Shown: in pieces, positions 7,501-61,229 of the stretch | Numbering within the stretch: the stretch's first letter is position 1 | How the letters are laid out: the number at the start of each line of letters is the position of its first letter | IMG/VR virus record: IMGVR_UViG_3300025141_000016 | Location: 186,001-250,000 of that record | DNA length: 64,000 nt | Reading direction: 5' to 3' (one strand) | Translations under genes and position numbers: made by a program | Notes under the pieces: generated by a model | The model's input: the letters and a program-made list of their open reading frames with translations, nothing else | Told to the model about the DNA's origin: nothing | Database searches by the model: none

Positions 7501-9144
7501 GCTGAAGGGGATTACCCTGGCGAGTGTGAGTGGAAAGGCAAGAAGGGCCTATCGTTTACCCCGGATGCCATCGAATACGTCTGGTTAGGTAAGCGGGCAG
7601 GCAAACCGTTCGATGAGGCGAAGGCCGAGCTTCACCAGTTCATTCCCGACCTCGACGTGCGGTCGGAGGCCCCACCTTCGGGCAACAGTCCGTGCCGAGT
7701 TGCCTCCCGGTTCCGCAGGATGGAAGCGGGGCTCCTACAAGCCCCGCCGAAACTCGTCAAAGCCGTGACCGAATGGGCACAGGCCACCTTCGCTGACCGC
7801 GCCCACCACAACGCCCTGGCCAAACAGGCCAAGTTCGACCGGACAGGAGCCGGAATCATCGGGGGTCAGGACACCCTCGATCTGTGGTTCAAGAGCATGA
7901 AGCCTTGGAAGCGCACCTCCGCTGGGAAAGGGGGTGAGGTGTCCACTACGTTCGACCTCACCGACTACCTTGATGGTTGGCGGTATCGGCACCTCTGGGA
8001 CAACCTCAATGCAGGCGAGCAACGTGCTCTCCGCAAAGGCCCTCTCCGTCCGATCACCGTGACCAACGCTTTTGATGAGGGACGTTCGGGTGCCATGGGT
8101 GCTTGGTCAGACAAGAGACATGAGTTCCAAGTGTGGCTCCCCGCCGATGTCTGGATGCCAGAAGTCATCCCCGACCTTGTGGAGAAGCACGACAAACTCA
8201 TCCCGAAAACCGTTCGCCACGAGTTGCAGCACGCCACCCAAGTCATCCTCGGTGCCTTGACGGGTCAGGATTACGGGGGCCTCCCGAAACGGAAGGTGAG
8301 GCAGCCTCACAGCATCGAGGAACAACGCCAGAAGCAGATTGAGGACAACGCATCCGCATCGCGTGAAACCTTCCGCTTTCCACCAGACACGTCCAGCCCA
8401 CGCGACGACCGACGGCGAGATCGGTATTACCGCTCTGATCTGGAGTACCAGACCTCCCTCACCGATGCCGTGGGCGATTGGGAGTCCGACTCCCTACCTC
8501 CGGTGCAACGATGGTTGGACGAGACGGACCTCAATGACCGCGACAAGGGCAAGGTGCTTCGGTGGGCTGTTCGCACCTTCGTCGGTGAAGGGCGAGCACG
8601 GTTCCCCACCCTTCCGCGTGACTTCAAACGCCCTGACTGGAACCCAGGCAAGATCAAGCCGTCCGAGTTCTTTACGCACATCAAGGGCGACCGGGAGCGG
8701 TGGGCAGATGCCGTGGCGACCTTTTACAAGGAGATCGCCCGCACCACCAAACTCGCCCGCCGTGTAGCTACCCGGTATGCGAAGCGTGACTACCCGAAAG
8801 CCGGAGGCTCCGTGAGTGGGCTGCGGGTCAAAGGGGATGCCCCCAACCAGAACTCCATCAGCGCCTCGTTCTCCGACTATGAAGTGCTCCCCGACGTGCG
8901 AGAGGTACCCCTCTCCGACTTCGATGCCGCACCACATGACATGTTCTACTCGGCAAGTGACCTGGGGAGGGTCCGAGAACTCGCGGAAGCCATCGAACAC
9001 AACGGCTGGATTGCACCTCTCATCGTGGTCATAGACGATGACCCCAAGCCGTACATTCTGGAAGGAGCACACCGACTCGCCGCACTGCACACCCTGTCGA
9101 AACGAACCTTCCCCGCCCTCGTGGTGAGAGACCTCGACGGATGA
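4585..9144 (+). CDS. polyvalent polyprotein: papain-like, ParB-like, zincin, GNAT, GNAT, unknown, zincin, ParB-like; tag-B linkers
   Basis: GACY...AHAF...LDARG; DGHHR; HELTH; LRGKGFGKLLY; QGWGPLLYDL; HELQH; LEGAHRL. Modules are separated by SRVASRF/Y, RRVATRY and [KR]TA. Confidence 0.85.
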   Translation: MMPRPSHKRVARRYASRTASEAERFPHGPNGPKADEWFRAWRARIGPYMRGACYDLAGFLHDEGGFPVWGVIDEDGIIAHAFAYNPRIRKGLDARGEVDPEDMMDGVIGAESVRPLTKKENRSLCSRWGSDERDFAQQFGKYLWDLRGSRLGAALRTATSTKIPAKTVYAGGWEWNKGGFADWPSFRRKPKREQIAWAKEYVGSGIREPVEVTVYSDGGVGFTDGHHRVMAGTLLDIEIPVRVKSRNFDKDLWPDLLALLKAGYTPKQYNPQGWKLTNSGVPPLEVVRRGPNAADEWIMSNERVKTAARPIRLPTREIKALAKKLAQRLYQWGLPKPGRVIAQEYLPLTNVMGDEVEVEILLTGTPNKWRDPFSSELVQGGFALTHKRSDNPLVRIFVNPDLGTRTFEMRPRRIVESELYEILAHELTHAADTWLGKGSAVGALEGLGPGSHHNHPAEVKALMRDVVTHLEDGEYVRELMGYGMDFNTAFREALKETQWPDIEPYLTPKNQKTILKGVYTHLQDQGLTKAASRTAGGFRRIIDEIEDKTGLEAKVEAGADNIKIELKRGTKIVGYFRASTVDPNSFQWKGAPLDCKEAWGQIGEPPVWIVRGALLSWWLRGKGFGKLLYKALFSHIASKKGVVGPNRCSGGNTSPDAQRVWKSLRSMYPKHGPLIDLRKMASASRVASRFRRMEAGMRTVKDLPDDWYVEITGSLSNLGIYLLDGDDNTVGSLDIHRTGDFLQINEIQARQGWGPLLYDLAMEVANEFNDEGLMPDRSSVSREARAVWEHYLNRRSDVEATLLPEWVHELAGSGHVRTHLDRYEPDSPLSYSYRKTTGNPFMRQLALQGQLESDDYSFDLPRAAASRVASRYAGRAYCICWPTDGLLYVEVPSYDHLRNLLLTQKWRGDAHLRTKDGYVPYFGGGIAFSFTKMRMKGVHPVWYIRKGFTKQQAVAHLVEDGLFVSERDALRHAEGDYPGECEWKGKKGLSFTPDAIEYVWLGKRAGKPFDEAKAELHQFIPDLDVRSEAPPSGNSPCRVASRFRRMEAGLLQAPPKLVKAVTEWAQATFADRAHHNALAKQAKFDRTGAGIIGGQDTLDLWFKSMKPWKRTSAGKGGEVSTTFDLTDYLDGWRYRHLWDNLNAGEQRALRKGPLRPITVTNAFDEGRSGAMGAWSDKRHEFQVWLPADVWMPEVIPDLVEKHDKLIPKTVRHELQHATQVILGALTGQDYGGLPKRKVRQPHSIEEQRQKQIEDNASASRETFRFPPDTSSPRDDRRRDRYYRSDLEYQTSLTDAVGDWESDSLPPVQRWLDETDLNDRDKGKVLRWAVRTFVGEGRARFPTLPRDFKRPDWNPGKIKPSEFFTHIKGDRERWADAVATFYKEIARTTKLARRVATRYAKRDYPKAGGSVSGLRVKGDAPNQNSISASFSDYEVLPDVREVPLSDFDAAPHDMFYSASDLGRVRELAEAIEHNGWIAPLIVVIDDDPKPYILEGAHRLAALHTLSKRTFPALVVRDLDG

Positions 9145-10478
9145 TCAAACCCTCTGCCAGCCGTGTTGCCTCCCGGTATGCGGGCCGCTCTGTCCCTCCC
9201 TTCAAGGTTCGGGATGCGGCGGCGAAGACACCTTCGGATCTGCCCGATGGGTGGTATGTGGTTGCCCGCTGGGTCGGCCCGTCGAGGTCATTCCAGTTGT
9301 ACGACGGAAAGAAAGAGGTCGGGTATATCCGAGCGACCCCGAACTCCTCCTGTGGTGGGGCCTATACGGTGCGTCAAGTATGGGCACCCTCCGGTTGGGG
9401 TCCGATGCTCTATGACCTGATGATGGAGGATGCGGGTCGTTATGGGGTGATGCCGGATCGAAGTCAGGTATCGGAAGACTCCGCTCGTGTTTGGTTCCAC
9501 TACCTCACGAAACGCCGCCGTGATGTGACCGCACACCCTTTGTGGGATGACCCCTCCATTCGTGATGATCGGGCGTGCGGCTATCATTATGAAGATACTG
9601 GTCCCGGTGTGTTTGAGTCCTTGGACTATCGGTACGTCAAGGACGGTCGCGGAGTGACGGGCTCACTGGAGCGTGAGGGCAGGCTCTTTGAAGGTGAGCA
9701 TCCCGAGTGGTCCGGTGTCCGAAAAGAAGCTGTGGCGCAGCGGTATGCGAAGCGACCCTTCGACCTCGCCATGAACGGACTGAAAGGTCTGGACGAGGGA
9801 AGGACCGTGACCCTGTACCACGGCACCACACGATCCTTCGACCGCTTTGACCTCACCAAGTCCAGGGACGAACTCGTCAACGACTTCTACGGCAAGGGGA
9901 TCTTCCTGACCCCATCCAAGAACGTCGCCTGGAAGTACGCCAACGCCAACCGGAACATCGGCCTCGACCCCAGCATCATTGGCGAACTGAAACGCAAGAA
10001 GCCCCAGGCCGGAGCCTTTCTGGAAAGCCTCTACTCCCAGGGATCCGATGCCTGGGAACCCATGCTCGCAGAAGCCAAAGCCGCAGGGCACGAACCCTAC
10101 GAGCACGAGGACTTCCTCAACGGGGTGGACGGGAACACCCTCGGTGACATAGCGGGGTACATCGAAGGGAGTGCAGTCCCACCACGCGGGGGCGGCTCAA
10201 CCAACATCTTCTCGACCAGTAGCGGTGCCCCCTACTGGCTCTACGACACCCTCGATGAAGTGGGCCTCGACTCCTCGGCGTACCGACCCAAGGTCTACAC
10301 CGTTGGGGTCACCGTACAGAACCCCCTCATCACCGCAAGCGCATCCGAAGCCCGCAAGGCAAGAGCCAATGGCTACGACAGCGTGGTCTTCCACGGCTCT
10401 CGGCTGGTCGATGGCTGGCCCGAGGTCGCCGTGTTTTCACCCAGGAACGCCAAGATCAAAAAGGTCGAGGTCGAGTAA
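9141..10478 (+). CDS. tag-B protein: GNAT plus ADP-ribosyltransferase-like (ART-PolyVal type) domain
   Basis: SASRVASRY; GWGPMLYDLMME; LYHGT...YGKGIFLT...GYDSV...EVAVF. Confidence 0.8.
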   Translation: MIKPSASRVASRYAGRSVPPFKVRDAAAKTPSDLPDGWYVVARWVGPSRSFQLYDGKKEVGYIRATPNSSCGGAYTVRQVWAPSGWGPMLYDLMMEDAGRYGVMPDRSQVSEDSARVWFHYLTKRRRDVTAHPLWDDPSIRDDRACGYHYEDTGPGVFESLDYRYVKDGRGVTGSLEREGRLFEGEHPEWSGVRKEAVAQRYAKRPFDLAMNGLKGLDEGRTVTLYHGTTRSFDRFDLTKSRDELVNDFYGKGIFLTPSKNVAWKYANANRNIGLDPSIIGELKRKKPQAGAFLESLYSQGSDAWEPMLAEAKAAGHEPYEHEDFLNGVDGNTLGDIAGYIEGSAVPPRGGGSTNIFSTSSGAPYWLYDTLDEVGLDSSAYRPKVYTVGVTVQNPLITASASEARKARANGYDSVVFHGSRLVDGWPEVAVFSPRNAKIKKVEVE

Positions 10479-20259: not shown

Positions 20260-20271
20260 TGCCTGTTGGTT

Positions 20272-21607: not shown

Positions 21608-21626
21608 TGGAGGAAGAAAAGGTAAG

Positions 21627-21653
21627 AAAACTGACCCCCCGGAGGGGGTCAGT
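21627..21653 (-). terminator. intrinsic terminator
   Basis: ACTGACCCCC-TCCG-GGGGGTCAGT-TTT immediately after the VWA gene. Confidence 0.7.
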
Positions 21654-21657
21654 GAGA

Positions 21658-23307: not shown

Positions 23308-23414
23308 CTGTGTCTCCGGGGCCTCTCGATGAGGCGGGGAAGAAAGGAAAGGAGTCGGGTCTTATTTAGGTCGAACCCGAGAAACGACCGGGGGTGTGCT
23401 CACCCCTACACTTC

Positions 23415-23447
23415 TATACGGAGATACCCAAGGGAGTTGAACCCCCC
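23415..23447 (-). promoter_or_regulatory. class E promoter
   Basis: GGGGGGTTCAAC-N15-CGTATA. Confidence 0.8.
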
Positions 23448-23461
23448 TGGGCATAGGTTTT

Positions 23462-37992: not shown

Positions 37993-38694
37993 ATGCGCCT
38001 ACTGATGATCATCTGCACCCTCATCCTTTCGGCGTGCATCAAGAAGCCTGTCCCGACCAGCCCAGTGGAGTCACCGGATCCGATTCCGGTGGTGTTGATC
38101 TCATTGGAGTCCGCGAGTTCCATCAGTGCTGTAGCGGGGCAGTTTGCCCAACAGTCTGGCGACTATGTGGGTTGTGTGACCGGCCTTGCCCTATCGGCGG
38201 CTTTGACCACAGCCCGCGACGGGGTGGCTGGGAACATTGAGGGTGGCCTCATCCCTGGCGTGGACCTCGATGTGGGTGTGTGCTTGGACCTCGCAGAGTC
38301 GCAACCCGAGGGCGAGGATGTTCCGGCGCTTGTCCAGCCCCTTGTGGATGTTGGGCTCCAGACAGTCAAGACTGTCCTCGACATTTACGGCAGTCAGATC
38401 GACTGCGCGGCGTTGGCATGGACCCAGGCTGGTCTGACCTACGCGGGTCAGGTGGTGGGTGCTGCGGTTGCAGAGATCGAAAGCCCCGACGGTAAGGTGA
38501 CCTTGGGTGAGGTCAGCGTGGACCTTGCAGACTGTGAACCTGCTCCCGAGGAACCTGCTCCCGAGGAAGCCCCTGTCGAGGAACCTGCTCCCGAGGAACC
38601 TGCTCCCGAGGAACTTGCTCCCGAGGAACCTGCTCCCGAGGAACCTGCTCCCGAGGAACCTGCTCCCGTCGAGGAGTCTACCGACTCACCGTGA
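37993..38694 (+). CDS. lipoprotein with C-terminal EEPAP repeats
   Basis: MRLLMIICTLILSAC lipobox; GAGGA RBS. Confidence 0.75.
   Translation: MRLLMIICTLILSACIKKPVPTSPVESPDPIPVVLISLESASSISAVAGQFAQQSGDYVGCVTGLALSAALTTARDGVAGNIEGGLIPGVDLDVGVCLDLAESQPEGEDVPALVQPLVDVGLQTVKTVLDIYGSQIDCAALAWTQAGLTYAGQVVGAAVAEIESPDGKVTLGEVSVDLADCEPAPEEPAPEEAPVEEPAPEEPAPEELAPEEPAPEEPAPEEPAPVEESTDSP
38536..38675 (+). repeat. 15-bp coding tandem repeat GAGGAACCTGCTCCC (EEPAP)
   Basis: About nine near-identical units. Confidence 0.9.
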
Positions 38695-39751
38695 TGCGGT
38701 CAGCGAGGAAGGTGACATCTGCCTTCCCCCATGGTGCCCATATCTGTTCCCAGTTGCCGCGTTTGCCCGCCGTGGGGGGGATGTAGAGCAAGACCATCTT
38801 GACCTTGGCTTCCCCGAGCATGACCATATCCGCTCCCTGGAAGGGGATCGCTGTGTTGGCCATGACCCCAAACACCAGGGAGAATGAGTCTATCCCGTCC
38901 GACCGATGTGGATGGGCCTGGGTGAAAGCCTTGCCGGACGAAGATTCCCACCAGGGAATCGCCCCTCTCCCCAGGTAGGAAAAGAGCAGGCGACCCAGGC
39001 GGTCGGATTCCATCGGCGTTGCTTGCAACTCTCGTCTCCGTCGGACTTTCTCTCGGCGGTCGAGAGGGCGACCATCGGGGCCAAAGCCGTACTGCACGGT
39101 TTCATATCGGAGTGCCCGTTTGAGTTTGCCGGGTAAGTCGCTGGGGCCGAAATACTCTCCGTACCAGAGTTCTACGTCGCGGGGCTTCAAGCCCAGTTCG
39201 TTGATCATGTCGTCTACTTCGTCAGCAGACACCTTACGGATCTTCCCGTTCTCACCCACGGCGTACCACTGTCTCACGTCACCCTTGCTGGCGTGGACCG
39301 AGCACCCGAGCCCGGTGTAGCAGAAGTCGGGGTCAATCGAAATGGTGCCAGAGTCCGGCTTCAGTTCGCCATCAGCCCCCGTAAGATGGGCGAAGACGCG
39401 CCCGTTGCCGTCGATCTCCGCGACGAACAACTCGTGGCCAAGCCGTTTGCCTTGCTGGCTGACCCCCCACTTCGCCACCTTGTCCCTGTCGGCACCCCAT
39501 TGAGCCCCAAAGGCTCGCTCCCCCTCAACGGAGTAGGAGCCGCCCTTGATCTCACCTGTGTCCCAAATGTCCCTGACTTCTTCGCCGTCCATGACCCGGA
39601 ACAGCGGCACCGAGGAGAGGAACTTCCCCACGGCGATGTTCCCACCGAAGCGGGATTGGGCTTTCTCGGTAGCTTCGGGGATCACCTCGACCTTCACGCT
39701 TCCAGCGGAGAGGTGACGGGCTGCAACTCGGCTGCAACTCGGACGGGTCAC
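38678..39751 (-). CDS. tag-B protein, possible ART-like N-terminal domain
   Basis: MTRPSCSRVAARHLSA; LFRVMDGEE...GEI. Confidence 0.7.
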   Translation of the reverse strand: MTRPSCSRVAARHLSAGSVKVEVIPEATEKAQSRFGGNIAVGKFLSSVPLFRVMDGEEVRDIWDTGEIKGGSYSVEGERAFGAQWGADRDKVAKWGVSQQGKRLGHELFVAEIDGNGRVFAHLTGADGELKPDSGTISIDPDFCYTGLGCSVHASKGDVRQWYAVGENGKIRKVSADEVDDMINELGLKPRDVELWYGEYFGPSDLPGKLKRALRYETVQYGFGPDGRPLDRREKVRRRRELQATPMESDRLGRLLFSYLGRGAIPWWESSSGKAFTQAHPHRSDGIDSFSLVFGVMANTAIPFQGADMVMLGEAKVKMVLLYIPPTAGKRGNWEQIWAPWGKADVTFLADRITVSR

Positions 39752-44000: not shown

Positions 44001-44637
44001 CGCCGCTCCTGGGGGAGTGGTGTCCGATGAACAGGTAGAGGAGGAAGCCATGGGGGCTATCGGCCCCCTCCTGGGGCTCTTGGAGTCCCGTGCGGACTTG
44101 CCCGAGGCCATGGAATATGTACGACAGTTGGAGCGAGCCAACGAGAAACTGGCCGCCTACGATGATCCCGACAACGCCAAGGCACGAGAACCAGCGGTGA
44201 CGTTGGGGACCATGCACTCATGGAAGGGCTTGGAAGTCCCCAACATGTACATCCCCATGGTCGGGGGGCGCTTCCCTCGCTTCGACAAGCAGAGCGAAGA
44301 AGACCTTGCCTCTGAACGGCGGCTCGCCTACGTCGCGGTCACTCGCGGTGAGGACAACGTGTTCGTTCTCGACATTCCAACAGCGCGGACGACCAAGGCG
44401 GGAACGGTCATTCAACGGAGTCAGTTCGTCGGGGAACTGTGTGTCCCTGACCTCTCCGCTGGGGCTCGTATCGCTTCCGATGCCGCCGAGGCGGATGAGG
44501 AGGAGATGCAGCAACTTACCGAGGACATGGATGCCATGATCGATGTGTACCTTGCTTCGGATGAGGCCACACCACCGGAACAGAGACTCGCCGTATCCTG
44601 GGGATCTACCCTCTTTGCCCCTCGGGGTGAGGGATGA
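41056..44637 (+). CDS. uvrD: UvrD/PcrA-family SF1A DNA helicase with N-terminal extension and insertion
   Basis: AGAGAGKT, LIDEAQD, IGDDKQAIYEFRGADP, LETNFRS, TMHSWKGLE, ERRLAYVAVTRG. Confidence 0.93.
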   Translation: MDKEAARPPSVTPQNMSELILFLLAFRSYVLLKGEEDPHTALGKKIAQRYRNLSEAGFARYFEPLIEGDQKFSRFKPFYRRATMGAPLQAALSQGEFLTELLPLLSQRATVLQETFSDSRAVQVVRKAGLACHEEDPAVVLRGIALVPSAAKLKIPRAWVREAVALADVSIEPAEGVLADSETAQTIGEELREVEAHILQVDPLTEEGVALREAKEEIIDRIDGVAAESEVPSAVFGAAAGAAAQPKEYRTATGATRKLLPDKEAAMMIRGRGIIAAGAGAGKTMTLASKVVYHINELGVPASSVIATSFSRKSAAELRKRIEKYGASLGSKRAAAGFGTTHSVVSQLMQQYGNGERKEGLKDYGVTTLVRLAMEQVQMGGGGTPPEAMSLFAGLSATAPTPADVDSPDSAPGIGLTFMEALQLAADRKQKIKWNNFLYGYLRGFFDSRDQWHRFKMRSTKNMTDPRGMNDKNKGIVEQIFQYTGVDYDIWNPEQKDPNLSGTTRTGAPKKKKRDKDKGLREKYEFFGRPAREWFNLGLDLTTEGADGEKTPMPVGEFKGAITKMKGKLISPTEAWHDDAHEDAHAAVYAAYEWLKGPYGEEDFQNHGDFDDVLIDMSKMMLRDPRARKKIQSRFRVLLIDEAQDLNRAQHLMFGLMAGFIDPDKVDQVASVDNIMDLANDDGSMTADTFCFIGDDKQAIYEFRGADPEAFIGLSDLVEGGAGFETHVLETNFRSGKLIVEAANRLMAYNTRQIPMVCNANPDRADEGGIKAISFAPVEGSDFSEPADWVAGHIQEQMGLGAGNSEDAPSWDAFGIGLRTNGEAMAYGLELIRRGIPFRSKVNFFSDRTTKALLGWLTIADEGVNGNPDRINAAVINVKNAPVTMLGKTFVERLGENATGNYIEWLQSDGPSIYGPRARWTKNVNDFTANLVAIAALKGAGMDAKEILHEIFQLQGFDGTNIKETLIDAVREDKDRMAELMAAAPGGVVSDEQVEEEAMGAIGPLLGLLESRADLPEAMEYVRQLERANEKLAAYDDPDNAKAREPAVTLGTMHSWKGLEVPNMYIPMVGGRFPRFDKQSEEDLASERRLAYVAVTRGEDNVFVLDIPTARTTKAGTVIQRSQFVGELCVPDLSAGARIASDAAEADEEEMQQLTEDMDAMIDVYLASDEATPPEQRLAVSWGSTLFAPRGEG

Positions 44638-45500
44638 ACACCTCTCGCACAGCGGCGGGAACCTACGTCCAGATCACTCGGCAGGAGTTTGAGGATTGGC
44701 TGGACTCCCTCGGGTTCCGGGGGAAGTGGCGACTCAAACCCGGTCGGGGCGGGATGTACCAACTCTTTTTGAGCCCCCAGGTGATGATTGAGATCAACAG
44801 CACCACGGGGTCACAGGCCCAGGTGATGCAACGGGGCCGCGCCTCCATGTCGTTGAAACTCGTCTCGCGGATCACGGGGAAGGTGCTGAACAAGAAAGCC
44901 ATGGGACAGCGACACTTCGCGAGAACAACGAACTGGCGTAAGAACTGGGCCAAGGGCGTTGAGCGGATGAAGACCGCCTACGAGGGGTCAAGGGGCTGGT
45001 ACGACCAGATTGCCGAGATTGAAGACCGCGACAAGTACAAGGCTGAAATGATGGGGCGTATCGAAGCCATCCCTGACTGGGACGGTGACGCTTTTCTCAC
45101 GAGCCTCCACGAACGGCTGGGGAAGGGTGGTGTCCTGACGGGCAAGCAAAAGGCAGCCCTGGAAAGAACAGAGGGAAGACGGCAGCCTGCACGGGAGCCG
45201 GAACAACCCCCCCGGCCTCGACGCGAGCGCCCGGAACCACCTACCCGTTCGCGGGTCCGAGAGCCGGAGCCCCCAGCGGAGCCCGCATGGCAACCTCCTG
45301 ACATTGAGACGGTACGGGAACTCTATCGCAGGGCTCGTGCTTCCAACGACACTTGGACCTTGGGGTTCGTGGAGTCTGTGGGGAAGATGATCAAGGGGGG
45401 TCGTCCATTGAGCGACCGCCAACAAAAGGTGCTTGATGAGAAGCTGGAAGACTACCGGCTCGGCCCGAACTCCCGGCGTGCCCATATCGTAGGGTGGTGA
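44634..45500 (+). CDS. hypothetical protein with two F..S.......L[TS].[KR]Q helical repeats
   Basis: MNTSRTAAG; FLTSLHERLGKGGVLTGKQ and FVESVGKMIKGGRPLSDRQ. Confidence 0.75.
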   Translation: MNTSRTAAGTYVQITRQEFEDWLDSLGFRGKWRLKPGRGGMYQLFLSPQVMIEINSTTGSQAQVMQRGRASMSLKLVSRITGKVLNKKAMGQRHFARTTNWRKNWAKGVERMKTAYEGSRGWYDQIAEIEDRDKYKAEMMGRIEAIPDWDGDAFLTSLHERLGKGGVLTGKQKAALERTEGRRQPAREPEQPPRPRRERPEPPTRSRVREPEPPAEPAWQPPDIETVRELYRRARASNDTWTLGFVESVGKMIKGGRPLSDRQQKVLDEKLEDYRLGPNSRRAHIVGW

Positions 45501-45504
45501 CCCC

Positions 45505-48500
45505 ATGGCACCCTTCCCCCAGCGTCTTCGATGCCAGGAGGACGGTGACTTCTACTTGATGGATCTGGCGAAGGATACCTTCGTTCACTTCACGCCCCCC
45601 GAACGGGCCGAGCAGATCATCCGGTCAGGTAAGTTGCTGATGCGACCGCCGTACAAGAAGTTCGGGATCGACGCGGTGACGGCGGTGTCAGCGGTATGGG
45701 GTAGCTTCGTACCCGGTGTGCAAACCACCCACAGCAAGCGTGATGATCTTGTCGCGGTGGTGTTTCAGACCAGAACTCTTCCCCAGGTCGGTCACCCCGA
45801 GGAGGTCATCTGGAAGCGCGATGTGGCTCTCGTCAACCCCAAGATCGTGTCCTACTCCAAGGGCAAGGGGATGCTGCGAAGTGGGTTCGACGGTCAGGTC
45901 TACTACTCGATGCCCTCGTGGTGCGATGGGGTCGAGAGTCGAACGGCCTCCCTGCTTTGCAATCCCAATGCTCTCTCGGGAGCATGGATTGACCCCACGG
46001 GGAAGGTATACGAGATACGGCGTGGGCTGACACATGACCAGTGGGCTGACGACCACCTCACCAACGACAGGGAATACCAGCAACAGATGTGGGATGTTGG
46101 TGCAGGTTCTCTCCTCCAAGATCGAGGATGGGTCCGGTTCGTCAACTTCATCAACATGGCTGTTGGAACCCGACCCTCTCGGGCAGCGATGGAAGCGGCT
46201 GCTGACCTCGTAGCTGATTGTGTGCTCTCCAGGCGTGATGTTGACCCCGAGAAGGACACCCTTTGGCTTGAGACGGGGCCGATGCCCCATGCCCGTGAAC
46301 TGTCTATATCCACCTTCATAGAGGAATACGGTTCCAAGGCCACGGAGGAGAAAATGTGGGAAGGTTTGCTGGCCCGCTTGGCTTCCCGAGTCACTGCTCG
46401 TTATCTCGATGCCGCCTGTGGTCCGGTGCCTCGGATCGTGGTTGCAGCCAACCTCAAAGCGTTGAAGCCGAACGACTGGCTGACCGTCTACCACGGCACT
46501 ACGCTGTCCACGGCCCCGAAACTACTCAACGGGTTCGACTCTACGAGAGTCAAGTCCCGACAGTTCGGGGGGCCGCGTCATAAAGGGCTGTTCGTCACCC
46601 CCACCTTCCGCACGGCACGCAACTTCGCCTCGTATGGACCAACCGTGCTGGAAATGGTGGTCCGGGCCAAGAACCTCCACGGCACGGACTACTCCGGGGT
46701 CACTGGACGGGATGATCCCAGAAGGGAAGAGATTTGGCGAGACAAGTACCCCGACTCCTTTCGGCCTTACTTGTCCCAGACATTGACACAGGGACATGAA
46801 CCGCAGGCGCTACTTCAAGGGCTCGTCGCACCGCGCCAGATCAAACGGGTTTGGCACGCACCGGGCCAGAATGAGCCGGGACAGTGGTATTCCCGTAAGG
46901 AGTTCCTCGATCTGGGGCTGGACCCCTCGGCCAACCCACGGGACAAGCAAGACCCCCTGCGGGATCTGGGCATTGACCTCTCCTACCCCAACTACGACTA
47001 TGACGAGTTCATAGAAGCCCTCGGGGTAGCCTATGGAAAACCCGGCAAGCCAATGAGCCGTGAACGCATCGAGAAGACGCTCACCATGCACGCTGAAATC
47101 TCGATGATTCCGGGGCGTTCTGACACATTACTGGAACTGATTGAGGGGGCGGGGTTCCAAGGACGCGCAGCACAGCGTTACGCCGACCGATTCCGTGAAA
47201 CCCTCGCTCAACAAAGCCGAGAGGTTGCCGCCAGCGCAAGTCGAGTCGCTGCCCGCTACCTCGTCGCAGACTGCAATCTGCGGCTTCCCTCTCATTCATG
47301 GATTGACCCCAAGGGGAAGGTTCATTTGGTTCCCCTTATGCACGATGTCTGGGCCGAGGAAAAGATACGATCTACGCCCTCGATGCTGCGTTCGTTTGTG
47401 AAACGCTACAGGGAATACTATCCCGATGAACTCTATGAGATCGACCATCCGTGGACCAGTTTTCTGGTTGACCAAGGTTGGGTGAGGGTGGCGAACTTTC
47501 TGAACTTTGAGGGGAGAGATCACCTTGTTTCCCCGCACGCTTGGGAGTCAGCCGCAGACCTCATCATCAACTGTGTGGTCAAGAAGCAGCTTGACCCCGA
47601 GACTACTGTCGTGACGGTCGCTGGATATGGGAAGCAGCGATACTCGGTGTCCCAGATCGTCAGGGAATGGGGTGGGCGCAAGGCCGAGGATCGGTTGTTT
47701 GGGGCACTCATGGCCCGCACCGCTGCCCGACTTTGGTATCACGGGACTGAAAAGCGTTTTGAAGAGTTCAAGACCTTTGAGAGCCACACGTTTGGGTCTG
47801 ACCCCTCCGAAGTGCCTCTGTTCTTCTCGCCCTCCAAGTCCTTTGCAAAGATGCACGCCCAAGGACCGAAGGGGGTCATCTACACGGCGCGGCTGAAGTG
47901 GCGCAAGGTGTTTGATAGCGCCAACTTGTATCGGGAATCTCGGTACTGGCCCCCCGAACGTGACGCTCTGACCCAAGAGGGGAAGGCCCTGTACGACGAC
48001 CTCGTAGGGGGCAAGGTGTTTCCCGGCATTGATGAAGACGATCTGCTTGACGGGTATCCGAGTCTTTGGTCGCAGGTGCTCCGTATGGATTACGATGTGA
48101 TTGAAACGACGGAGTTCAAGCGGTGGCTCAAAAAGAACGGTTACGACGCGGCTTATGTCACGGGAGATGGTGAGCAGAACGTGTTTGTCTTCTCCCCGAG
48201 ACAGGTCGAGGTTGTGGGCGTGCAAAGGGCCTCCGCATCCGTTTCTGCTTCCCGTGTCGCTGCTCGCCATCCCGTCGTGGACATTGACCCCAGCAAAGTA
48301 AAGTTCAAGATCCGATCCAGTAGCGATGCTGTGGCTGTGGAAATGCGGTATGGCGGTAAGCGCATTGGCGGCATGAACGCCCACAAGGTCCGTTATCCAG
48401 AAGAGAAGGACTGCCCTCGGGACGTTACCGCGTTGGCTGAACGCTTCCCCGAGTTGGTGACGGGAGAATGGAAGCGCAGCGATGGTGAGGTGTGGCGATA

Positions 48501-49248
48501 CATCACCGCGCTGGCCGTCTTCAAAGCGTTCATCACCGAGGAGGAGTTTCGGGGGTATGGGCTCGGCAAGAAGATGTATAAGGCACTGATGGGGGCTTGG
48601 TTCAAGAAGGTCGGACCATTTCTTTTCATGCCCTATAAGTGTGACGGGGGTTCGGGCACGTCACCAGACGCGATGCGGGTTTGGCACTCTTTAGCCAAGG
48701 AGTTTCCATCAAGTGGCGACGTGGTTGCGGTGATGAAGAATCCGCGTGTGGCTCGGGGGCAGTTACCCCAGTACCGAAAGAGGGCACACACCCCCGACTC
48801 CAGCGAGGAGGTCGAGAACTGGGTGGATGACTTTGGGCGGGAAAACAACTACACGCCTGGAACCTGTGACCTCAACCGTGGCGACTGCGACATGATGTCA
48901 AACGTCTTCGCGGACTGGTTTGAGGACCAGACTGGCGTGGGGCTTCAGATATGGGCCGGTCAGGGGTTCATCCCTCCTCTCGGGAAGGATGCCAATGACC
49001 TCTGGGTCATGCTTTCGGGGGACAAAGCCCACAAGAAAGGCGAGAAACCCCTCTCCCATGTGGTCGTCGTCTGGGGGGATTGGGTCATTGACCTTACAGG
49101 TCGTCAGTTCGGTTCCAAGTACAAGGCCCCTGTGTACTCTCTTTCGGAGTTCAAGAAGCGGTGGGCCACCGTTGGGAAGGCCCGTCGGGCTGACCGAGGG
49201 ATCAACAACCTCCGACGGATGATGCTCCAGAACTCCAGCGATTGGTAG
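45505..49248 (+). CDS. polyvalent polyprotein: three ART-like domains, two WIDPxG repeats, GNAT, papain-like; tag-B linkers
   Basis: FVHFT...EEVIW; VYHGT...GLFVT; WYHGT...LFFS...GYDA; FRGYGLGKKMY; GDCD...SHVVV...VIDLTGRQF; linkers SRVTARY, SRVAARY, SRVAARH and RTA. Confidence 0.85.
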   Translation: MAPFPQRLRCQEDGDFYLMDLAKDTFVHFTPPERAEQIIRSGKLLMRPPYKKFGIDAVTAVSAVWGSFVPGVQTTHSKRDDLVAVVFQTRTLPQVGHPEEVIWKRDVALVNPKIVSYSKGKGMLRSGFDGQVYYSMPSWCDGVESRTASLLCNPNALSGAWIDPTGKVYEIRRGLTHDQWADDHLTNDREYQQQMWDVGAGSLLQDRGWVRFVNFINMAVGTRPSRAAMEAAADLVADCVLSRRDVDPEKDTLWLETGPMPHARELSISTFIEEYGSKATEEKMWEGLLARLASRVTARYLDAACGPVPRIVVAANLKALKPNDWLTVYHGTTLSTAPKLLNGFDSTRVKSRQFGGPRHKGLFVTPTFRTARNFASYGPTVLEMVVRAKNLHGTDYSGVTGRDDPRREEIWRDKYPDSFRPYLSQTLTQGHEPQALLQGLVAPRQIKRVWHAPGQNEPGQWYSRKEFLDLGLDPSANPRDKQDPLRDLGIDLSYPNYDYDEFIEALGVAYGKPGKPMSRERIEKTLTMHAEISMIPGRSDTLLELIEGAGFQGRAAQRYADRFRETLAQQSREVAASASRVAARYLVADCNLRLPSHSWIDPKGKVHLVPLMHDVWAEEKIRSTPSMLRSFVKRYREYYPDELYEIDHPWTSFLVDQGWVRVANFLNFEGRDHLVSPHAWESAADLIINCVVKKQLDPETTVVTVAGYGKQRYSVSQIVREWGGRKAEDRLFGALMARTAARLWYHGTEKRFEEFKTFESHTFGSDPSEVPLFFSPSKSFAKMHAQGPKGVIYTARLKWRKVFDSANLYRESRYWPPERDALTQEGKALYDDLVGGKVFPGIDEDDLLDGYPSLWSQVLRMDYDVIETTEFKRWLKKNGYDAAYVTGDGEQNVFVFSPRQVEVVGVQRASASVSASRVAARHPVVDIDPSKVKFKIRSSSDAVAVEMRYGGKRIGGMNAHKVRYPEEKDCPRDVTALAERFPELVTGEWKRSDGEVWRYITALAVFKAFITEEEFRGYGLGKKMYKALMGAWFKKVGPFLFMPYKCDGGSGTSPDAMRVWHSLAKEFPSSGDVVAVMKNPRVARGQLPQYRKRAHTPDSSEEVENWVDDFGRENNYTPGTCDLNRGDCDMMSNVFADWFEDQTGVGLQIWAGQGFIPPLGKDANDLWVMLSGDKAHKKGEKPLSHVVVVWGDWVIDLTGRQFGSKYKAPVYSLSEFKKRWATVGKARRADRGINNLRRMMLQNSSDW

Positions 49249-49470
49249 CTACCGTTTGAGGAAGGCGGCGGCGACACCCCATCCCTTCGACGTGAGCCGA
49301 CGGGGCTCTTTCTTGGTGATCCAGCCCTTTGTCAGTGCATGGTGGTGGTAGGGGCAAGGCCCCGAAACCGGGATGGAACCCAGAGGGTTTTTCAAGCAGT
49401 GGTCGGCCCACTTGATCATCACCTTCCGAGTCATCTGGTTGATGAACGCCTCTTCGCCTTTCGATCTCAT
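49249..49470 (-). CDS. small winged-helix-like protein
   Basis: GGAGA RBS; KGWI...LTSKGW. Confidence 0.6.
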   Translation of the reverse strand: MRSKGEEAFINQMTRKVMIKWADHCLKNPLGSIPVSGPCPYHHHALTKGWITKKEPRRLTSKGWGVAAAFLKR

Positions 49471-49520
49471 AGGTATCTCCTGCCCCACTATACCGAGGGG
49501 GTGCGCTTCATCTGTACCCC

Positions 49521-49535
49521 CGGTACTCATGCTAT
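49521..49535 (+). promoter_or_regulatory. class L promoter motif
   Basis: CGGT-ACTCATG-CTAT, 30 nt before ATG 49565. Confidence 0.65.
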
Positions 49536-49564
49536 GGGCACACGAGAATGAGAGAGCACCGCCT

Positions 49565-50578
49565 ATGTCCGAACTTCACCTGTATGACTTCGACGGAACA
49601 CTGTTCCGAAGTCCCCATGAGCCTGCGGTGTGGGATGGTCAGTGGTGGAACGACGTGCGCTCCCTGATCCCCCCGTGTGTCCCACAGAAGCCGGGGGCTG
49701 ATTGGTGGGTCAACCAAACTGTCAGCAGTGCCAAGCAGTCGATCTCCGACCCAGACGTGTTTGCCATGATGATCACAGGGAGGAATGCAAACTCGGGTCT
49801 TCGGTTCCGGGTGCCAGAACTCCTCAAACAGCGAGGGCTCAACTTCGATGAGGTCCATCTGACCCCCGTTAGCAGCACCCTGGGGTACAAGAAGAAGCTG
49901 CTGGGGAATACGTTGGGGCGGTATCCCCTCATCGACACCGTGCGGATGTGGGACGACAGACCCTCACACCTCCGAGCCTTCGCGCAGGTTGCGGAGAAGA
50001 TGGGGATTGACCCCGAAAACATCCATGCCACCCAGGTCCGGGCCAAGTCCAAAGACCCCGAGTGCGAAGAAGACAGCCCAGCAGGGGGTGGTTTCCTGTC
50101 AGACCCCCCTCCAATCGGAGACGTGTGCCGATATGTAGGGGTTTTTCTTGATGCTTCTTCCAAGGCAGCCCTGTCACATGCGTTCCCTTTTGCCCACAAC
50201 AAGATCAAGAACGACCATGTGACCCTCTGCCTTGGCCCCGCTCTTGGGGGAAACATAGCGGAGGGTGCCCTCGATCTCCTGGGAACGAAGGTACGCATGA
50301 AGGTGATTGGCTACGCCGAGGATGAGGATGGGCAAGCAGTAGTGGTTTCTGTTCCCCCCGGACTCATCTCGGACGCTTCCAGAATCCCTCATGTCACCTT
50401 GTCCATCTCGGACTCGGTGCAGTCCAAGTACAGCAACACTCTCCTCCGCAAAGGGTGGGAGCGTGTTCGCGGCCCCGCCATCAGTGGGGTGATTGATATG
50501 TTTCCGCGCTCCATGCGAAGGCAAGCAAGTGCAGTTCGGGTAGCCTTCCTGCATTCTCGCTTGGGCCGTAGCGGGTAG
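49565..50578 (+). CDS. HAD phosphatase (Swiss-Army-knife RNA-repair type) fused to a 2H phosphoesterase
   Basis: LYDFDGTLFRSP, ITGR, MWDDR; two HVT motifs; C-terminal RQASAVRVAFLH. Confidence 0.8.
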   Translation: MSELHLYDFDGTLFRSPHEPAVWDGQWWNDVRSLIPPCVPQKPGADWWVNQTVSSAKQSISDPDVFAMMITGRNANSGLRFRVPELLKQRGLNFDEVHLTPVSSTLGYKKKLLGNTLGRYPLIDTVRMWDDRPSHLRAFAQVAEKMGIDPENIHATQVRAKSKDPECEEDSPAGGGFLSDPPPIGDVCRYVGVFLDASSKAALSHAFPFAHNKIKNDHVTLCLGPALGGNIAEGALDLLGTKVRMKVIGYAEDEDGQAVVVSVPPGLISDASRIPHVTLSISDSVQSKYSNTLLRKGWERVRGPAISGVIDMFPRSMRRQASAVRVAFLHSRLGRSG

Positions 50579-50616: not shown

Positions 50617-51942
50617 ATGGCCCATGACGACGATGCAAAGAAAACCAGTGAGACTCCGTTTTCTCTGACGCAGAACCCCGCTCCGAACCCTGTGACGGGG
50701 TTGGCGTACAAGACCCAGAAACGGGATCTTGTAGAGAAGATCCTGGCGACGTTCCGGTCTGTGCTGCCGAGCAACTATGTCGCACAGGTCAATGGCCCCT
50801 GGTACTCGTTGCAGTTTCAGGCGATGGCCGAGCAGTTGGCCGAGATCCAAATCTTGGGGACCGAGGTCTACAAAGACTCTGATTGGGACTTCACGCGCAC
50901 AGACTTCTTGTGGCAAGTGCTGGGGTCACTCGTTTTTCCAGGGGCGACTGACCGCTCGGGCATCCCGGCCATCGACGGGGACACCGCCTATCGGCAGTTC
51001 CTACATAAGATGGTGTTGTTTCTGTTGGACGGAGCCACCAAAGCCAGCCTGGAAAGAGGGTTAGAGGCCCTTGATCCCGATGTGGTGGCCACCATCACCG
51101 AGAGGTATCTGGAGTCCCCCCCTCGTGATGAAGATGGGGCCTTCACCATTGATGACCAGTTCGTCATCGACGTTTTCATCGAGGGGGCAGCACCCAACAC
51201 CTTCCCTGCTGACCCCTTCGTTCTCCAGCAGAACGCGGAACTGGTGCTGGCAGCCTTGAAGCCAGCGCACGTCATCTATTCGTACTCCTACTTGTTCCGC
51301 GATGCCTTCGACAAGATCGCGGATGACAGTGGGGGCCTTTCCCTTGATCTCGACTCCTATTACTACGCCGACCTGCGGAAGTGGTGTCTGGGTGCCCAGC
51401 GCATCACCGGATCCGGGGACACCCTCACCAACCGGATGCACTTTTCGGACCCCACCAAGTCCTTCCAGAACGTCCGGGCTGGGGCAATCCTCACCTTATC
51501 CGCTGGTGCTAACAAGGGTCGCTATCGGGTGGTGTCAAAGAGGGTTCTCCTGGGGGGCATCGACCCAACATCAGTGACCTACACCCTCTCCACGTCCCTT
51601 GTTCTCACAGGGACTCTGACCGCTCCTGGCGTGGATACGGTGACATTGAGCGCGGCCCCTGATTGGAGCCTCATCCCAGTGGACACCACCATCACCATTG
51701 GAAGTGGGATCAACGCTGGGACGTATCGCTTGGACACAGTGCTGGGGCCAACGGGAGGACCAGTGGGAACTGTTGGGATCAGTGGCGCACAGGTGCGCCT
51801 GTCCCCCAGCATCCTTCAGGTGGAACGCCGAATGTTGAGCACGTTGAATGCTCAAGCCTATGAGGTCGGTGTGGATCGACTCGGGGTACAACTCCCCCAC
51901 GTTGTTGCTGGTGAGAACGTCTCCACCCAGTTCCTTTTGTGA
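50617..51942 (+). CDS. baseplate wedge-like structural protein
   Basis: LPSNY...DTAYRQFL...GAT...LKPAHV as in P2 gpI/Mu gp48-type proteins; T/G-rich beta C-terminus. Confidence 0.65.
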   Translation: MAHDDDAKKTSETPFSLTQNPAPNPVTGLAYKTQKRDLVEKILATFRSVLPSNYVAQVNGPWYSLQFQAMAEQLAEIQILGTEVYKDSDWDFTRTDFLWQVLGSLVFPGATDRSGIPAIDGDTAYRQFLHKMVLFLLDGATKASLERGLEALDPDVVATITERYLESPPRDEDGAFTIDDQFVIDVFIEGAAPNTFPADPFVLQQNAELVLAALKPAHVIYSYSYLFRDAFDKIADDSGGLSLDLDSYYYADLRKWCLGAQRITGSGDTLTNRMHFSDPTKSFQNVRAGAILTLSAGANKGRYRVVSKRVLLGGIDPTSVTYTLSTSLVLTGTLTAPGVDTVTLSAAPDWSLIPVDTTITIGSGINAGTYRLDTVLGPTGGPVGTVGISGAQVRLSPSILQVERRMLSTLNAQAYEVGVDRLGVQLPHVVAGENVSTQFLL

Positions 51943-51949
51943 GGCGGCG

Positions 51950-52771
51950 ATGACCCCTTCAAGCCAACGTGTAGCTTCCCGGTGGGCGAAGTCCCAAGCC
52001 AACTGGACGCTGCCCTATCTGGAAAAACTCATCAAGGCAGCCGAGGGTGACCCCACAGGGTGGGGGGAGAGTAGTCCTGCCGCCCGCGTCCTGCGGCAGA
52101 TGATCAAGTCCTCCGGGTTCGGGAACCTTGACCCGTTCCCAGTAGGTGAACTGTGGGACTACTTGACCTCATACGATGTGGACTCCGACGAGATCGCGGT
52201 GTTGAAGAAAGTTCGACCCCCCCGAGCACGGAAAAGGAAGGTAGGTCCGACATTCTACGAAGCACTACGCGCCTTTGAGCAGGCAACGGGGAAACACACG
52301 ACCACATCCCGCATTGACTGGGACAACGACCACCACTTGGCCCCGGCATTGTTGGCGATCACCAAAGCCGTCTCCAAGTTGCCCAAGCGGGCTGCCCGCC
52401 TCTGGCAGTCGGAAGTCAAGGAGGTGATGCTGGTCGGGCGCAACAAGAGCACCGAGGATGCCTCTTGGCGGGCCGGTGGCGTGATGCGTTTAGTGCTCGG
52501 AAAGAGTGGTTTCCACTCTGTGTCCCAAAGCGTTCCCCCCTGGCGCTCCCACATTGTCCATGAACTCGGGCACGCACTGGAGGACAAGTTGAATCTGGTG
52601 GTGACCGCTTGGTCCTCGGACCCCTACGGCCATGAACCATACATTTCGGCATACGCGGACACGAACGCCTCGGAGGACTTTGCCGAGACGTTTCAGGCTT
52701 TGGAGATGGAGCCGAGCCGCCTACGACGAGTAGCCCCTGCCAAGTATGAGGACATGAAGGCTCGCTTTTGA
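51950..52771 (+). CDS. tag-B zincin metallopeptidase
   Basis: MTPSSQRVASRW; IVHELGHALE...ISAYADTNASEDFAE. Confidence 0.8.
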   Translation: MTPSSQRVASRWAKSQANWTLPYLEKLIKAAEGDPTGWGESSPAARVLRQMIKSSGFGNLDPFPVGELWDYLTSYDVDSDEIAVLKKVRPPRARKRKVGPTFYEALRAFEQATGKHTTTSRIDWDNDHHLAPALLAITKAVSKLPKRAARLWQSEVKEVMLVGRNKSTEDASWRAGGVMRLVLGKSGFHSVSQSVPPWRSHIVHELGHALEDKLNLVVTAWSSDPYGHEPYISAYADTNASEDFAETFQALEMEPSRLRRVAPAKYEDMKARF

Positions 52772-58823: not shown

Positions 58824-59135
58824 GTGTACCGATTATGGATTGTGGACCGGGATCTGAAACCGACCGTGCTGAGTGCGGCTTACCTGACCGTCCATGAGGC
58901 GATGGGGTCGGCAGCGCGTTTGATGAAGGGGTTTGGTGCCCCGGCGTTGGATGCCAGGAACATTCTGATGTGGGCAGGGAAGCCCAGCCTTGTGGTCTTT
59001 GACCCCACCTTTTCGGTCGTTGTGTCGGCGGTCATCGAGGGAGGTCAACTGGTGTCGAGTGGTGACGATCCTGTCCCCCTTGATCCTGACGACAACGTGG
59101 GTCCATGCCAGACGACCCCTTCAATCTCCGAGTAG
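58824..59135 (+). CDS. hypothetical protein
   Basis: GGAGG RBS before GTG. Confidence 0.5.
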   Translation: MYRLWIVDRDLKPTVLSAAYLTVHEAMGSAARLMKGFGAPALDARNILMWAGKPSLVVFDPTFSVVVSAVIEGGQLVSSGDDPVPLDPDDNVGPCQTTPSISE

Positions 59136-59150
59136 CGGTAGGAGCCCTAT
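59136..59150 (+). promoter_or_regulatory. class L promoter motif
   Basis: CGGT-AGGAGCC-CTAT, 29 nt before GTG 59179. Confidence 0.65.
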
Positions 59151-59178
59151 AGGTTCCGAGGGGTCAGGAGCCCTCATC

Positions 59179-60773: not shown

Positions 60774-61229
60774 ATGAGCGCATCCCCCCAGAAAGTAGCC
60801 GAGCGGTGGGCCTCCGAAGCCAAGTTCTTCCGTGGCCTCCACAGTCGCAACAAGGGCATCTTCTTTCGTGGGGCCAAGAACCCCGGTGCCGGTGGCGGGG
60901 CTGGCTTTGGTGCTCTGGGACGTGGCCTTTATCTCGCGTGGGACAAGGGGATCGCCCAGTTCTTTGCTGACCGAGCCGGGGGTCAGGTATACGCCTACAA
61001 GATTCCGTCCAGCCTCAAACTGCTCGATGCCCAGAGCAGCGAGATGGCGACGATCAAGGAAGGGATGGGATTCAAGCCCTGGCAGTATTCAGACGATCCC
61101 ATGTACGCCGCTGTCGTCACAGCCGAGGTAAAAGACCTTGGATACGACGGGGTGATCTCCGACAAAGCGGCAGATGGCCTTGTCTTGTTCGATCCCCGTA
61201 AAGCGAAGCTGGTGGACCTACCGGAGTGA
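60774..61229 (+). CDS. tag-B ADP-ribosyltransferase-like protein
   Basis: SPQKVAERW; FFRG...LGRGLYLA...GYDGVI...LVLFDP. Confidence 0.7.
   Translation: MSASPQKVAERWASEAKFFRGLHSRNKGIFFRGAKNPGAGGGAGFGALGRGLYLAWDKGIAQFFADRAGGQVYAYKIPSSLKLLDAQSSEMATIKEGMGFKPWQYSDDPMYAAVVTAEVKDLGYDGVISDKAADGLVLFDPRKAKLVDLPE

Follow-up and report, generated by a model that had tools for sequence, protein, structure and literature searches.

What kind of protein joins so many dissimilar domains in a single chain, and what is the function of the short peptide that recurs between them? These questions are raised by an open reading frame (ORF) at positions 45,505 to 49,248 of a 64,000-nucleotide stretch of DNA (hereafter the window), which corresponds to bases 186001-250000 of the 297,104-bp IMG/VR virus record IMGVR_UViG_3300025141_000016. 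By its architecture and by its signature ART-PolyVal domain (ART, ADP-ribosyltransferase), the product is a phage polyvalent protein, a class described by Iyer, Burroughs, Anand, de Souza and Aravind in 2017 (PMC5512222). The ORF is made up of seven modules, called here M1, W1, M3, W2, M5, M6 and M7 in order of appearance, and an 11-residue peptide, hereafter the tag, is found in canonical or degenerate form at all six of the junctions between them. This conserved inter-module tag is the main new element of the protein, as the published work on polyvalent proteins does not describe one (PMC5512222). The reading we favor, with a probability of roughly 0.55, is that the ORF encodes a polyvalent effector protein in which the tag, as a portable signal, directs enzymes into the capsid and/or shows where they are to be separated.

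Architecture of the polyvalent protein

By its size the record (roughly 60% G+C) is that of an uncultivated huge phage, and CheckV estimated the record to be about 67% complete. All translations used table 11 only. Searches of cultured phage genomes at both the DNA and the protein level returned nothing similar to the ORF. The ORF is nonetheless a genuine gene and not a chance product of GC-rich sequence, because it contains a Pfam ART-PolyVal domain above the gathering score, has 17 relatives in the databases and occurs as an identical copy on a second, independent IMG/VR contig of 150 kb.

Module borders were set by BLAST comparison with the relatives and by searches for paralogues within the genome. 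The 17 relatives, all from other metagenomes, each have single modules in common with the ORF at 43-83% identity, and the order and combination of modules vary among them. Because the relatives have only single modules in common with it, the ORF appears to have been built from shuffled cassettes, each consisting of a tag plus a module. A preliminary description of the window, made from the sequence alone, had already proposed seven modules; this map and most of its module labels survived testing, and every motif that it had named was found in the order given (HFT at residue 28, EEVIW at 99, WIDPTG at 161, HDQWA at 177, GWVR at 208 and 658, YHGT at 329 and 745, GLFVT at 361, WIDPKG at 599, HDVWA at 613, LFFS at 772, GYD at 879, TSPDA at 1052 and RVW at 1058). 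Polyvalent proteins carry at least two unrelated catalytic domains, and within 1247 residues this ORF holds three ART-type modules, a GNAT-like module, a thiol-enzyme-like module and two copies of a domain named here WIDP, after its motif.

A conserved tag between modules

The tag has the consensus (A/P)S(A/P)S-RVA(A/S)R(Y/F)(A/L). It is canonical at junctions 2, 3 and 5 and degenerate at junctions 1, 4 and 6, where the degenerate forms were validated by paralogues and relatives that have either a canonical tag or a [KR]-T-A-S-x-Cys linker at the same place. At junction 1, for example, the peptide is of the linker type that joins tandem WIDP copies in relatives, and this region is a linker with low predicted local distance difference test (pLDDT) values in the structural model of M1. 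Variants of the tag also stand before standalone homologues of M7.

Genome-wide figures for the tag were based on a count of 284 genes. For the string RVA[AS]R, 20 occurrences were counted where shuffled proteins gave 0.49; with a following aromatic or histidine residue required, the figures were 18 and 0.04. A position-specific scoring matrix (PSSM) for the tag gave 32 sites scoring at least 12, in 23 of the 284 genes, where 0.15 were expected; weaker sites numbered 29 against an expected 4.4. Tags were also present in 13 of the 17 relatives and in 36 of 149 WIDP-family representatives, where between 0 and 0.2 were expected. Of the 32 strong tags, 20 are internal, nine are close to a start codon (within about 10 residues) and three are at the extreme C-terminus. 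Tagged genes are arranged in arrays with 4-nucleotide stop/start overlaps, so that an N-terminal tag occupies the same position as a junction tag. The proteins that carry it are enzyme-like, including ART, GNAT, NUDIX, C39-like peptidase, ParB-like, nucleotidyltransferase, zincin-motif and transglutaminase-like members. The tag strings had no match in the searchable literature.

Arginine, valine, alanine and serine codons vary freely between copies of the tag, so that it is the peptide and not the DNA that is under selection. A role for the tag at the DNA level, as a repeat, a promoter or a recombination site, was rejected on the same grounds, serine being encoded by AGC as well as by TCC. Another proposal is that the peptide has no function of its own and was inherited with a mobile cassette, as its linker or terminal helix, or is a scar of recombination that aids shuffling. 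Shuffling of modules is indeed clear, the tag has been lost from some junctions, and it is helical and continuous with the last WIDP helix. Set against this, eleven positions are conserved over more than 30 paralogous sites and in distant relatives, and the tag is present at the N-termini of proteins with unrelated folds; moreover, a peptide conserved at eleven positions despite free synonymous change would provide poor microhomology at the DNA level. A functionless tag is thus, in our estimation, highly improbable.

ART-type modules

The preliminary description had reported three ART-like modules, and the three stand on different footings. M5 matched the Pfam family PF18760 (ART-PolyVal) with an E value of 9.5e-12 and 46.3 bits, above the gathering cut-off of 31.2. 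M3 scored below this threshold, with 17 bits and an E value of 0.011, and all five members of the M3 family matched PF18760 weakly (E of at least 0.009), in every case confined to the model's N-terminal half. A jackhmmer profile that started from the Pfam-significant ART domain of the gene at 9141, searched against a small local database, recruited M5 with an independent E value (iE) of 4e-26 and, with an iE of 1e-15, residues 312-379 of M3 together with all M3 homologues. On the basis of these profile comparisons M3 was accepted as a divergent relative of ART-PolyVal for its N-terminal half.

M1 could be placed only by its predicted fold. Neither it nor its family had a sequence-profile match in Pfam, NCBIfam or the PDB. 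An AlphaFold2 model built with 36 homologues had a pLDDT of 89.5 and a predicted template modelling score (pTM) of 0.82. The preliminary description had named a Foldseek search as a check, and the top matches for M1 in this search were ART folds (DarT, cholera toxin A1, Tpt1/KptA and pierisin), although these were weak, with a best E value of 0.075. VIA, which is independent of Foldseek, agreed: nearly all of the 50 matches listed were ART folds, with Z scores of 6.0 to 2.9, and only 74 of 48,161 chains reached a Z score of at least 2. The best of these were TreTu (Z 6.0, root-mean-square deviation (rmsd) 2.9 over 83 aligned residues), KptA (5.5) and DarT (4.6), followed by diphtheria toxin, PARPs, Arr, pertussis toxin and RES toxins. 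Because the specificity of these fold matches is striking, though the scores are modest, M1 is assigned a predicted ART fold. It resembles the DarT, Tpt1/KptA and TreTu-type ARTs in its compact fold of about 120 residues and in having a helix after the histidine of the first core strand (H-F-T in M1), and it differs from them in having 8-16% identity, Z scores of 4.6-6.0 and no sequence-profile match. In the M1 family H28 and S62 are invariant and E100 is at least 90% conserved, all on predicted strands, and these three are candidate catalytic residues. When the family was checked for an H-Y-E/D or R-S-E constellation, the candidate tyrosine, Y50, was found not to be invariant. Alignment of M1 or M3 with the M5 family by hhalign gave a probability of 0.2% on shallow alignments; this was uninformative and was superseded by the later M1 and M3 results.

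Other ART-like genes had also been described as tagged. The gene at 9141 has both an N-terminal tag and a Pfam ART-PolyVal domain, and that at 60774 opens with a variant of the tag and ends in an ART-PolyVal-like motif. For the reverse-strand gene starting at 39751 the N-terminal tag was found, but there was no evidence of an ART. Outside the window, a 180-residue Y-H-G-T protein (G000:C1:38154-38696, reverse strand) has a weak link to M3, and a 620-residue protein (G000:C1:109482-111344, forward strand) contains a clear paralogue of M3 at residues 387-625. With these two extra ART-like modules, the phage has at least six or seven modules of ART type.

This abundance bears on another explanation of the tag, as a regulatory or modification site: its arginines might be ADP-ribosylated by the phage's own ARTs, holding enzymes inactive, or it might be a degron or a site for an AAA+ adaptor. 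The arginines are nearly invariant (31 of the 32 strong sites at position 0, and 30 of 32 at position +4), and the genome is unusually rich in ART-type modules. Yet many of the tagged proteins are not ARTs, and the ART-PolyVal clade is of the H-Y-D type, grouped with PARP and diphtheria-like enzymes and not with the arginine-specific R-S-E enzymes (PMC5512222). We consider a regulatory role of this kind quite improbable.

The WIDP domain

W1 and W2 are the two copies of an internal duplication (residues 152-297 and 590-743, 32% identity, BLASTP E value 2e-21), so the duplicated domain noted in the preliminary description is real, and its statement that the domain could not be assigned holds. 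No Pfam match was found for W1, W2 or ten standalone members, NCBIfam gave no match and the PDB profile search gave nothing meaningful. The structural model is very confident (pLDDT 95.8, pTM 0.90). Its best Foldseek match in the PDB had an E value of 0.97, a shape search of the ESM Atlas reached a TM score of at most 0.51, to unnamed proteins, and the best match in BFVD (E value 0.012) was an uncharacterized phage protein; a protein-language-model atlas search had no usable match. A gelsolin-like fold was tried and rejected, as the best Z score in VIA, 5.2 (rmsd 3.0 over 87 aligned residues), fell under the tool's stated background of 7-8. We call WIDP neither gelsolin-like nor a new fold and regard it as an unnamed family that has no convincing structural match.

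The family is large. An exhaustive HMMER search found 283 cluster representatives at an E value of 1e-3 or below and 126 at 1e-10 or below. Standalone members have 140-190 residues. Multi-copy proteins reach eight full copies (in the search table, as many as nine matched stretches), and some of the proteins consist of almost nothing but WIDP copies. In an alignment of 107 sequences, G17 and H28 were invariant and C3, S9, W12, P15, A32, L55, G59, W60 and C90 were at least 90% conserved. The family is mildly acidic, with a median isoelectric point of 5.8. Our best guess is that each WIDP domain acts on its own as an effector unit that either binds metal or depends on a thiol, and a further guess is that C3, H28 and C90, with H20 (58% of members), could form a zinc site.

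Elsewhere, WIDP adjoins topoisomerase IB and GGACT domains. In the relatives P0018, P0028 and P0057 a type IB topoisomerase (PF01028, E values from 1e-26 to 1e-28) is situated inside WIDP-containing giant proteins, one of which also contains a gamma-glutamyl cyclotransferase domain.

GNAT-like and thiol-enzyme-like modules

The stretch TSPDA-RVW-SL of M6, which had been reported to recur in the protein at 4585-9144, was confirmed in that 1519-residue protein (at about residue 650) and is also present in a third paralogue outside the window. The assignment of M6 as a GNAT is weakly supported but consistent. Its own Pfam score is below the cut-off (E value 0.085, 13.7 bits against 27), while the presence of motif A, the Pfam GNAT match of its orthologue P0007 (E value 7e-4) and a profile search of the PDB are in favor. 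In the latter, the top match was an N-acetyltransferase (E value 0.0095), with at least 11 further GNATs among the weak matches.

M7 had been called papain-like. An alignment of seven sequences, including six standalone homologues, showed an invariant G-D-C-D followed by H-V-V and W-V-x-D-x-T-G, with C49, H106 and D117 invariant (numbering of residues 1080-1247 of P0001, the present ORF). This order of Cys, His and Asp is typical of papain/transglutaminase-like thiol enzymes and makes M7 a candidate on pattern only. There was no profile match in Pfam, NCBIfam or the PDB, hhalign showed no similarity to the genome's own C39-like and transglutaminase-like proteins, and the protein-language-model atlas gave only unnamed look-alikes for M7. 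The part of the label that stands is the Cys/His/Asp pattern, from which M7 is probably a thiol hydrolase or transferase.

Four of the modules (M1, M3, M6 and M7) are under curated family thresholds, and some relatives consist of tandem WIDP copies only. It might thus be asked whether the modules have lost their catalytic function, leaving a protein that is a bulk internal-head or scaffold-like filler. No family, though, varies in its candidate catalytic residues: these are H28, S62 and E100 in M1, the YHGT histidine in M3 and M5 (H330 and H746), GNAT motif A in M6 and the Cys/His/Asp set in M7. We regard the filler explanation as far-fetched.

Genomic setting and other tagged genes

The coordinates of the ORF, its modules and junctions, its neighbors and the other tagged genes are collected in Table 1.

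Table 1 Features of the polyvalent ORF and of related or neighboring genes (positions in the window; aa, amino acids).
Feature	Position	Strand	Basis or remarks
Whole ORF (P0001), polyvalent multi-enzyme protein	45505..49248	+	1247 aa plus stop; ATG start
M1 (aa 6-150), divergent ART-fold domain (predicted)	45520..45954	+	AlphaFold2 model and fold searches
Junction 1 (aa 145-151), degenerate short tag S-R-T-A-S-L-L	45937..45957	+	Followed by conserved WIDP Cys152
W1 (aa 152-292), first WIDP copy	45958..46380	+	Duplication alignment, family search, model
Junction 2 (aa 293-301), tag ASRVTARYL	46381..46407	+	PSSM 16.5
M3 (aa 302-577), divergent ART-PolyVal-like core (about aa 312-470) and helical C-terminal extension	46408..47235	+	
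Junction 3 (aa 578-586), canonical tag ASRVAARYL	47236..47262	+	PSSM 33.0
W2 (aa 590-736), second WIDP copy	47272..47712	+	
Junction 4 (aa 737-744), degenerate tag ARTAARLW	47713..47736	+	Retained before M5 homologues in other proteins
M5 (aa 744-912), ART-PolyVal domain (PF18760)	47734..48240	+	Pfam and family alignment
Junction 5 (aa 915-923), canonical tag ASRVAARHP	48247..48273	+	PSSM 28.2
M6 (aa 924-1078), GNAT-like	48274..48738	+	Acetyl-CoA motif A R-G-x-G-x-G-K; shared TSPDA-RVW-SL
Junction 6 (aa 1080-1087), degenerate tag PRVARGQL	48742..48765	+	Aligned with a canonical tag of the 1519-aa paralogue
M7 (aa 1088-1247), candidate papain/transglutaminase-like thiol enzyme	48766..49245	+	Pattern in seven-sequence alignment only
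Second polyvalent protein, 1519 aa	4585..9144	+	Tag at residue 9; four internal tags
Tagged ART-PolyVal protein	9141..10478	+	Best-scoring tag of the genome, residues 4-14
Protein with N-terminal tag, function not assigned	38678..39751	-	Tag search
UvrD-type helicase, 1193 aa	41056..44637	+	Upstream of the ORF
288-aa protein of no known kind	44634..45500	+	Between the helicase gene and the ORF
RNA-repair-type protein	49373..50578	+	Directly downstream of the ORF
Tagged HExxH zincin-motif protein	51950..52771	+	Tag residues 3-13; Pfam metallopeptidase E about 0.1 only
Transglutaminase-like Cys / H-A-W-x-E / Asp pattern, 403 aa	58990..60201	+	No Pfam match
Small protein, N-terminal tag variant and ART-PolyVal-like C-terminal motif	60774..61229	+	Tag variant PSSM 20

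The genes for the UvrD-type helicase and the 288-residue protein overlap by 4 nucleotides and are translationally coupled, and a gap of 4 nucleotides separates the pair from the ORF. A related contig of 218 kb (L023) keeps this gene order, with a UvrD helicase, small ORFs and a polyvalent protein that begins with M1. The downstream product matched HAD_SAK_1 (E value 9e-22) and, weakly, a cyclic phosphodiesterase, and has a weak tag-like peptide 12 residues before its C-terminus. ARAGORN found no tRNA or tmRNA genes over positions 1-64000 of the window.

Whereas the ORF is not among the virion genes, other tagged genes are inside the head module. At least six of them surround the head genes at 9-34 kb of the genome, several being interleaved with the genes for a major head protein (phrog_2522, E value 9e-55) and a head-maturation protease (phrog_18299, E value 1.3e-12); these two and the scaffold candidates are encoded at 19549-24226 of the genome. 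This protease was found through PHROGs only; the T4-type and HK97-type protease models, PF03420 and PF04586, gave no match. In the same region, a 905-residue protein with a tRNA nucleotidyltransferase-like domain (G000:C1:11563-14280; phrog_2244, E value 2e-23) opens with the tag variant S-P-S-Q-V-A-R-R-W. Two ORFs outside the window open with long dipeptide repeats, (VS)n at G000:C1:28403-28702 and (SR)n at 4734-5834, and the former is just upstream of three consecutive tagged genes.

Among the tagged genes of the window, the 1519-residue protein contains a GNAT-like paralogue of M6 at about residues 610-680, a weak HExxH zincin signal at residues 394-437 and a weakly ParB_N-like C-terminus; its stop codon is overlapped by 4 nucleotides by the start of the gene at 9141. 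For the zincin-motif protein a longer ORF, 51848-52771, can be read, and its start is suggested to be wrong because the tag directly follows the methionine at 51950. The transglutaminase-like protein at 58990-60201 is bracketed by two canonical tags, at residues 84 and 389, the second of them 14 residues before the stop codon, and its annotated TTG start is probably too far upstream. The small protein at 60774-61229 is homologous to the last module of the relative P0002. The zincin-motif protein is a candidate processing peptidase, and a Peptidase_C39_2 protein (E value 2e-8) outside the window, at G000:C1:287254-288507, with a canonical tag at residue 272, is a further candidate tag-related protease.

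With such candidate peptidases at hand, the ORF might encode a cytoplasmic polyprotein, in the style of RNA viruses, which is cut at the tags by the phage's own tagged peptidase, the tag being a protease site and nothing else. The candidates for the peptidase would be M7, the protein at 58990-60201, the C39-like protein and the zincin-motif protein. The gene context, which is one of replication and repair and not of the virion, speaks for this explanation, as do the position of a thiol-enzyme-like module at the end of the chain, three further peptidase-like proteins that carry tags themselves and capsid proteins that have none. Against it, only C39_2 is significant among the peptidase assignments, and neither the remaining tagged polyvalent proteins nor most of the relatives contain M7. 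A tag situated 10-15 residues from a terminus would be of little use as a pure cleavage site, and the head module itself includes several tagged genes. We judge a purely cytoplasmic polyprotein to be unlikely.

Proposed role of the tag

In the reading we favor, of a polyvalent effector with a portable capsid-loading and/or separation signal, one polypeptide would carry several unrelated host-modifying enzymes, namely three of ART type, one of GNAT type, a thiol enzyme and the two Cys/His-bearing WIDP copies. The tag would recruit the proteins that bear it into the assembling capsid and/or mark the cut sites at which separate enzymes are released. The tagged set, about 23-30 of the 284 genes, would then be cargo delivered with the DNA and would reprogram the host early in infection.

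Several observations weigh against this proposal. The neighbors of the ORF are genes for a UvrD helicase and for RNA repair, and about 210 kb separate it from the head module. Neither MPTase-PolyVal (PF18818) nor MuF (PF04233) was detectable in the ORF or in the 297-kb, about 67%-complete record. The capsid protein, the scaffold candidates and the head protease do not carry the tag, unlike the sites of T4-type and phiKZ-type prohead proteases, and these proteases cut after Glu, which the consensus lacks. In the WIDP model the tag that follows W1 finishes a helix and is not an extended linker, three of the six junction tags are degenerate, and the relatives P0002, P0009, P0015 and P0017 have junctions with no recognizable tag. 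Scores for M1 in the fold searches are modest (Z of at most 6.0), and M3, M6 and M7 are all under curated family thresholds. What the analysis establishes is the ORF and its modules, the duplication, the ART identity of M1, M3 and M5 (by fold or by family) and a tag that exceeds chance, is conserved as a peptide and recurs in relatives; enzymatic activity, packaging and injection, cleavage, and a protease or receptor that reads the tag are what we infer. A predicted complex of residues 60-330 of the head protease with the 45-residue tagged N-terminus of the protein encoded at 9141 scored 0.00, which speaks neither for nor against.

Head-packaged effectors are a phage's first move against host defenses, and to find them normally requires virion proteomics of a cultured phage. 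Should the tag be an address label, the set of proteins ejected by uncultivated huge phages could be predicted directly from metagenomes. The injected effector repertoire of a whole clade of huge phages would become readable from sequence (about 10% of the genes here), and it would include two new effector families, the WIDP Cys/His domain and a mini-ART resembling DarT and Tpt1. Foreign proteins, too, could be loaded into capsids with such a label as a transferable handle. Biochemical and structural studies of anti-defense mechanisms could start from the M1 mini-ART family and from WIDP, which comprises at least 283 clusters.

Comparison with known systems

The preliminary description had suggested a much expanded version of the injected arsenal represented by T4 Alt, an ADP-ribosyltransferase that is carried in the head and injected (PMC5512222, PMC9026906). 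The idea is reasonable but not new, as it is the polyvalent-protein hypothesis already published (PMC5512222, PMC9503650), which has been restated for jumbo phages (PMC7824862) and for NAD-dependent systems (PMC9503650). Like the published polyvalent proteins, the present ORF encodes a giant protein that joins unrelated enzyme domains, has ART-PolyVal in more than one copy and places a GNAT beside an ART, an arrangement typical of the class (PMC5512222). Its domains are mosaic and shuffled among relatives, and the predicted role is again early host takeover accompanying DNA delivery. It differs in its position away from virion genes, in the lack of any detectable MPTase-PolyVal, MuF or named LPD domain, and in having two families outside Pfam (WIDP and the M1-type ART) as well as a tag between modules. 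That the tag is a self-sufficient capsid-loading and processing signal which replaces the MuF/MPTase system of classical polyvalent proteins is a tentative idea, to which we would give somewhat less than an even chance.

The internal proteins of T4 have in common a short N-terminal capsid-targeting sequence, which directs cargo into the prohead and is removed by the gp21 prohead protease. In T4 the signal occurs at the N-terminus alone and cleavage follows a Glu (L/I-x-E); Alt is an R-S-E enzyme. The tag is similar in being a short peptide near the N-terminus of several proteins (9 of the 32 strong tags), and dissimilar in being Arg-rich and Glu-free and in occurring also at internal and C-terminal positions; ART-PolyVal, moreover, is of the H-type, in contrast to the R-S-E type of Alt. 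In the giant phages SPN3US and phiKZ a prohead protease processes ejection proteins (PMC5694885, PMC7411985, PMC10052503). These are huge phages as well, in which many cargo proteins have one short processing motif in common, but that motif is (A/S/G)-x-E and is found also in shell and scaffold proteins, whereas the tag has no Glu. A third parallel comes from encapsulins, in which a short conserved peptide at a terminus or in a linker suffices to load diverse enzymes into a shell of the HK97 fold. Here too the likeness is that of a short portable peptide, seen from sequence alone, and the sequences themselves are unrelated. Measured against these systems, the polyvalent strategy of the ORF is already known, and what sets it apart is the tag, the two families outside Pfam, the lack of detectable hub peptidase and MuF domains and the setting away from virion genes.

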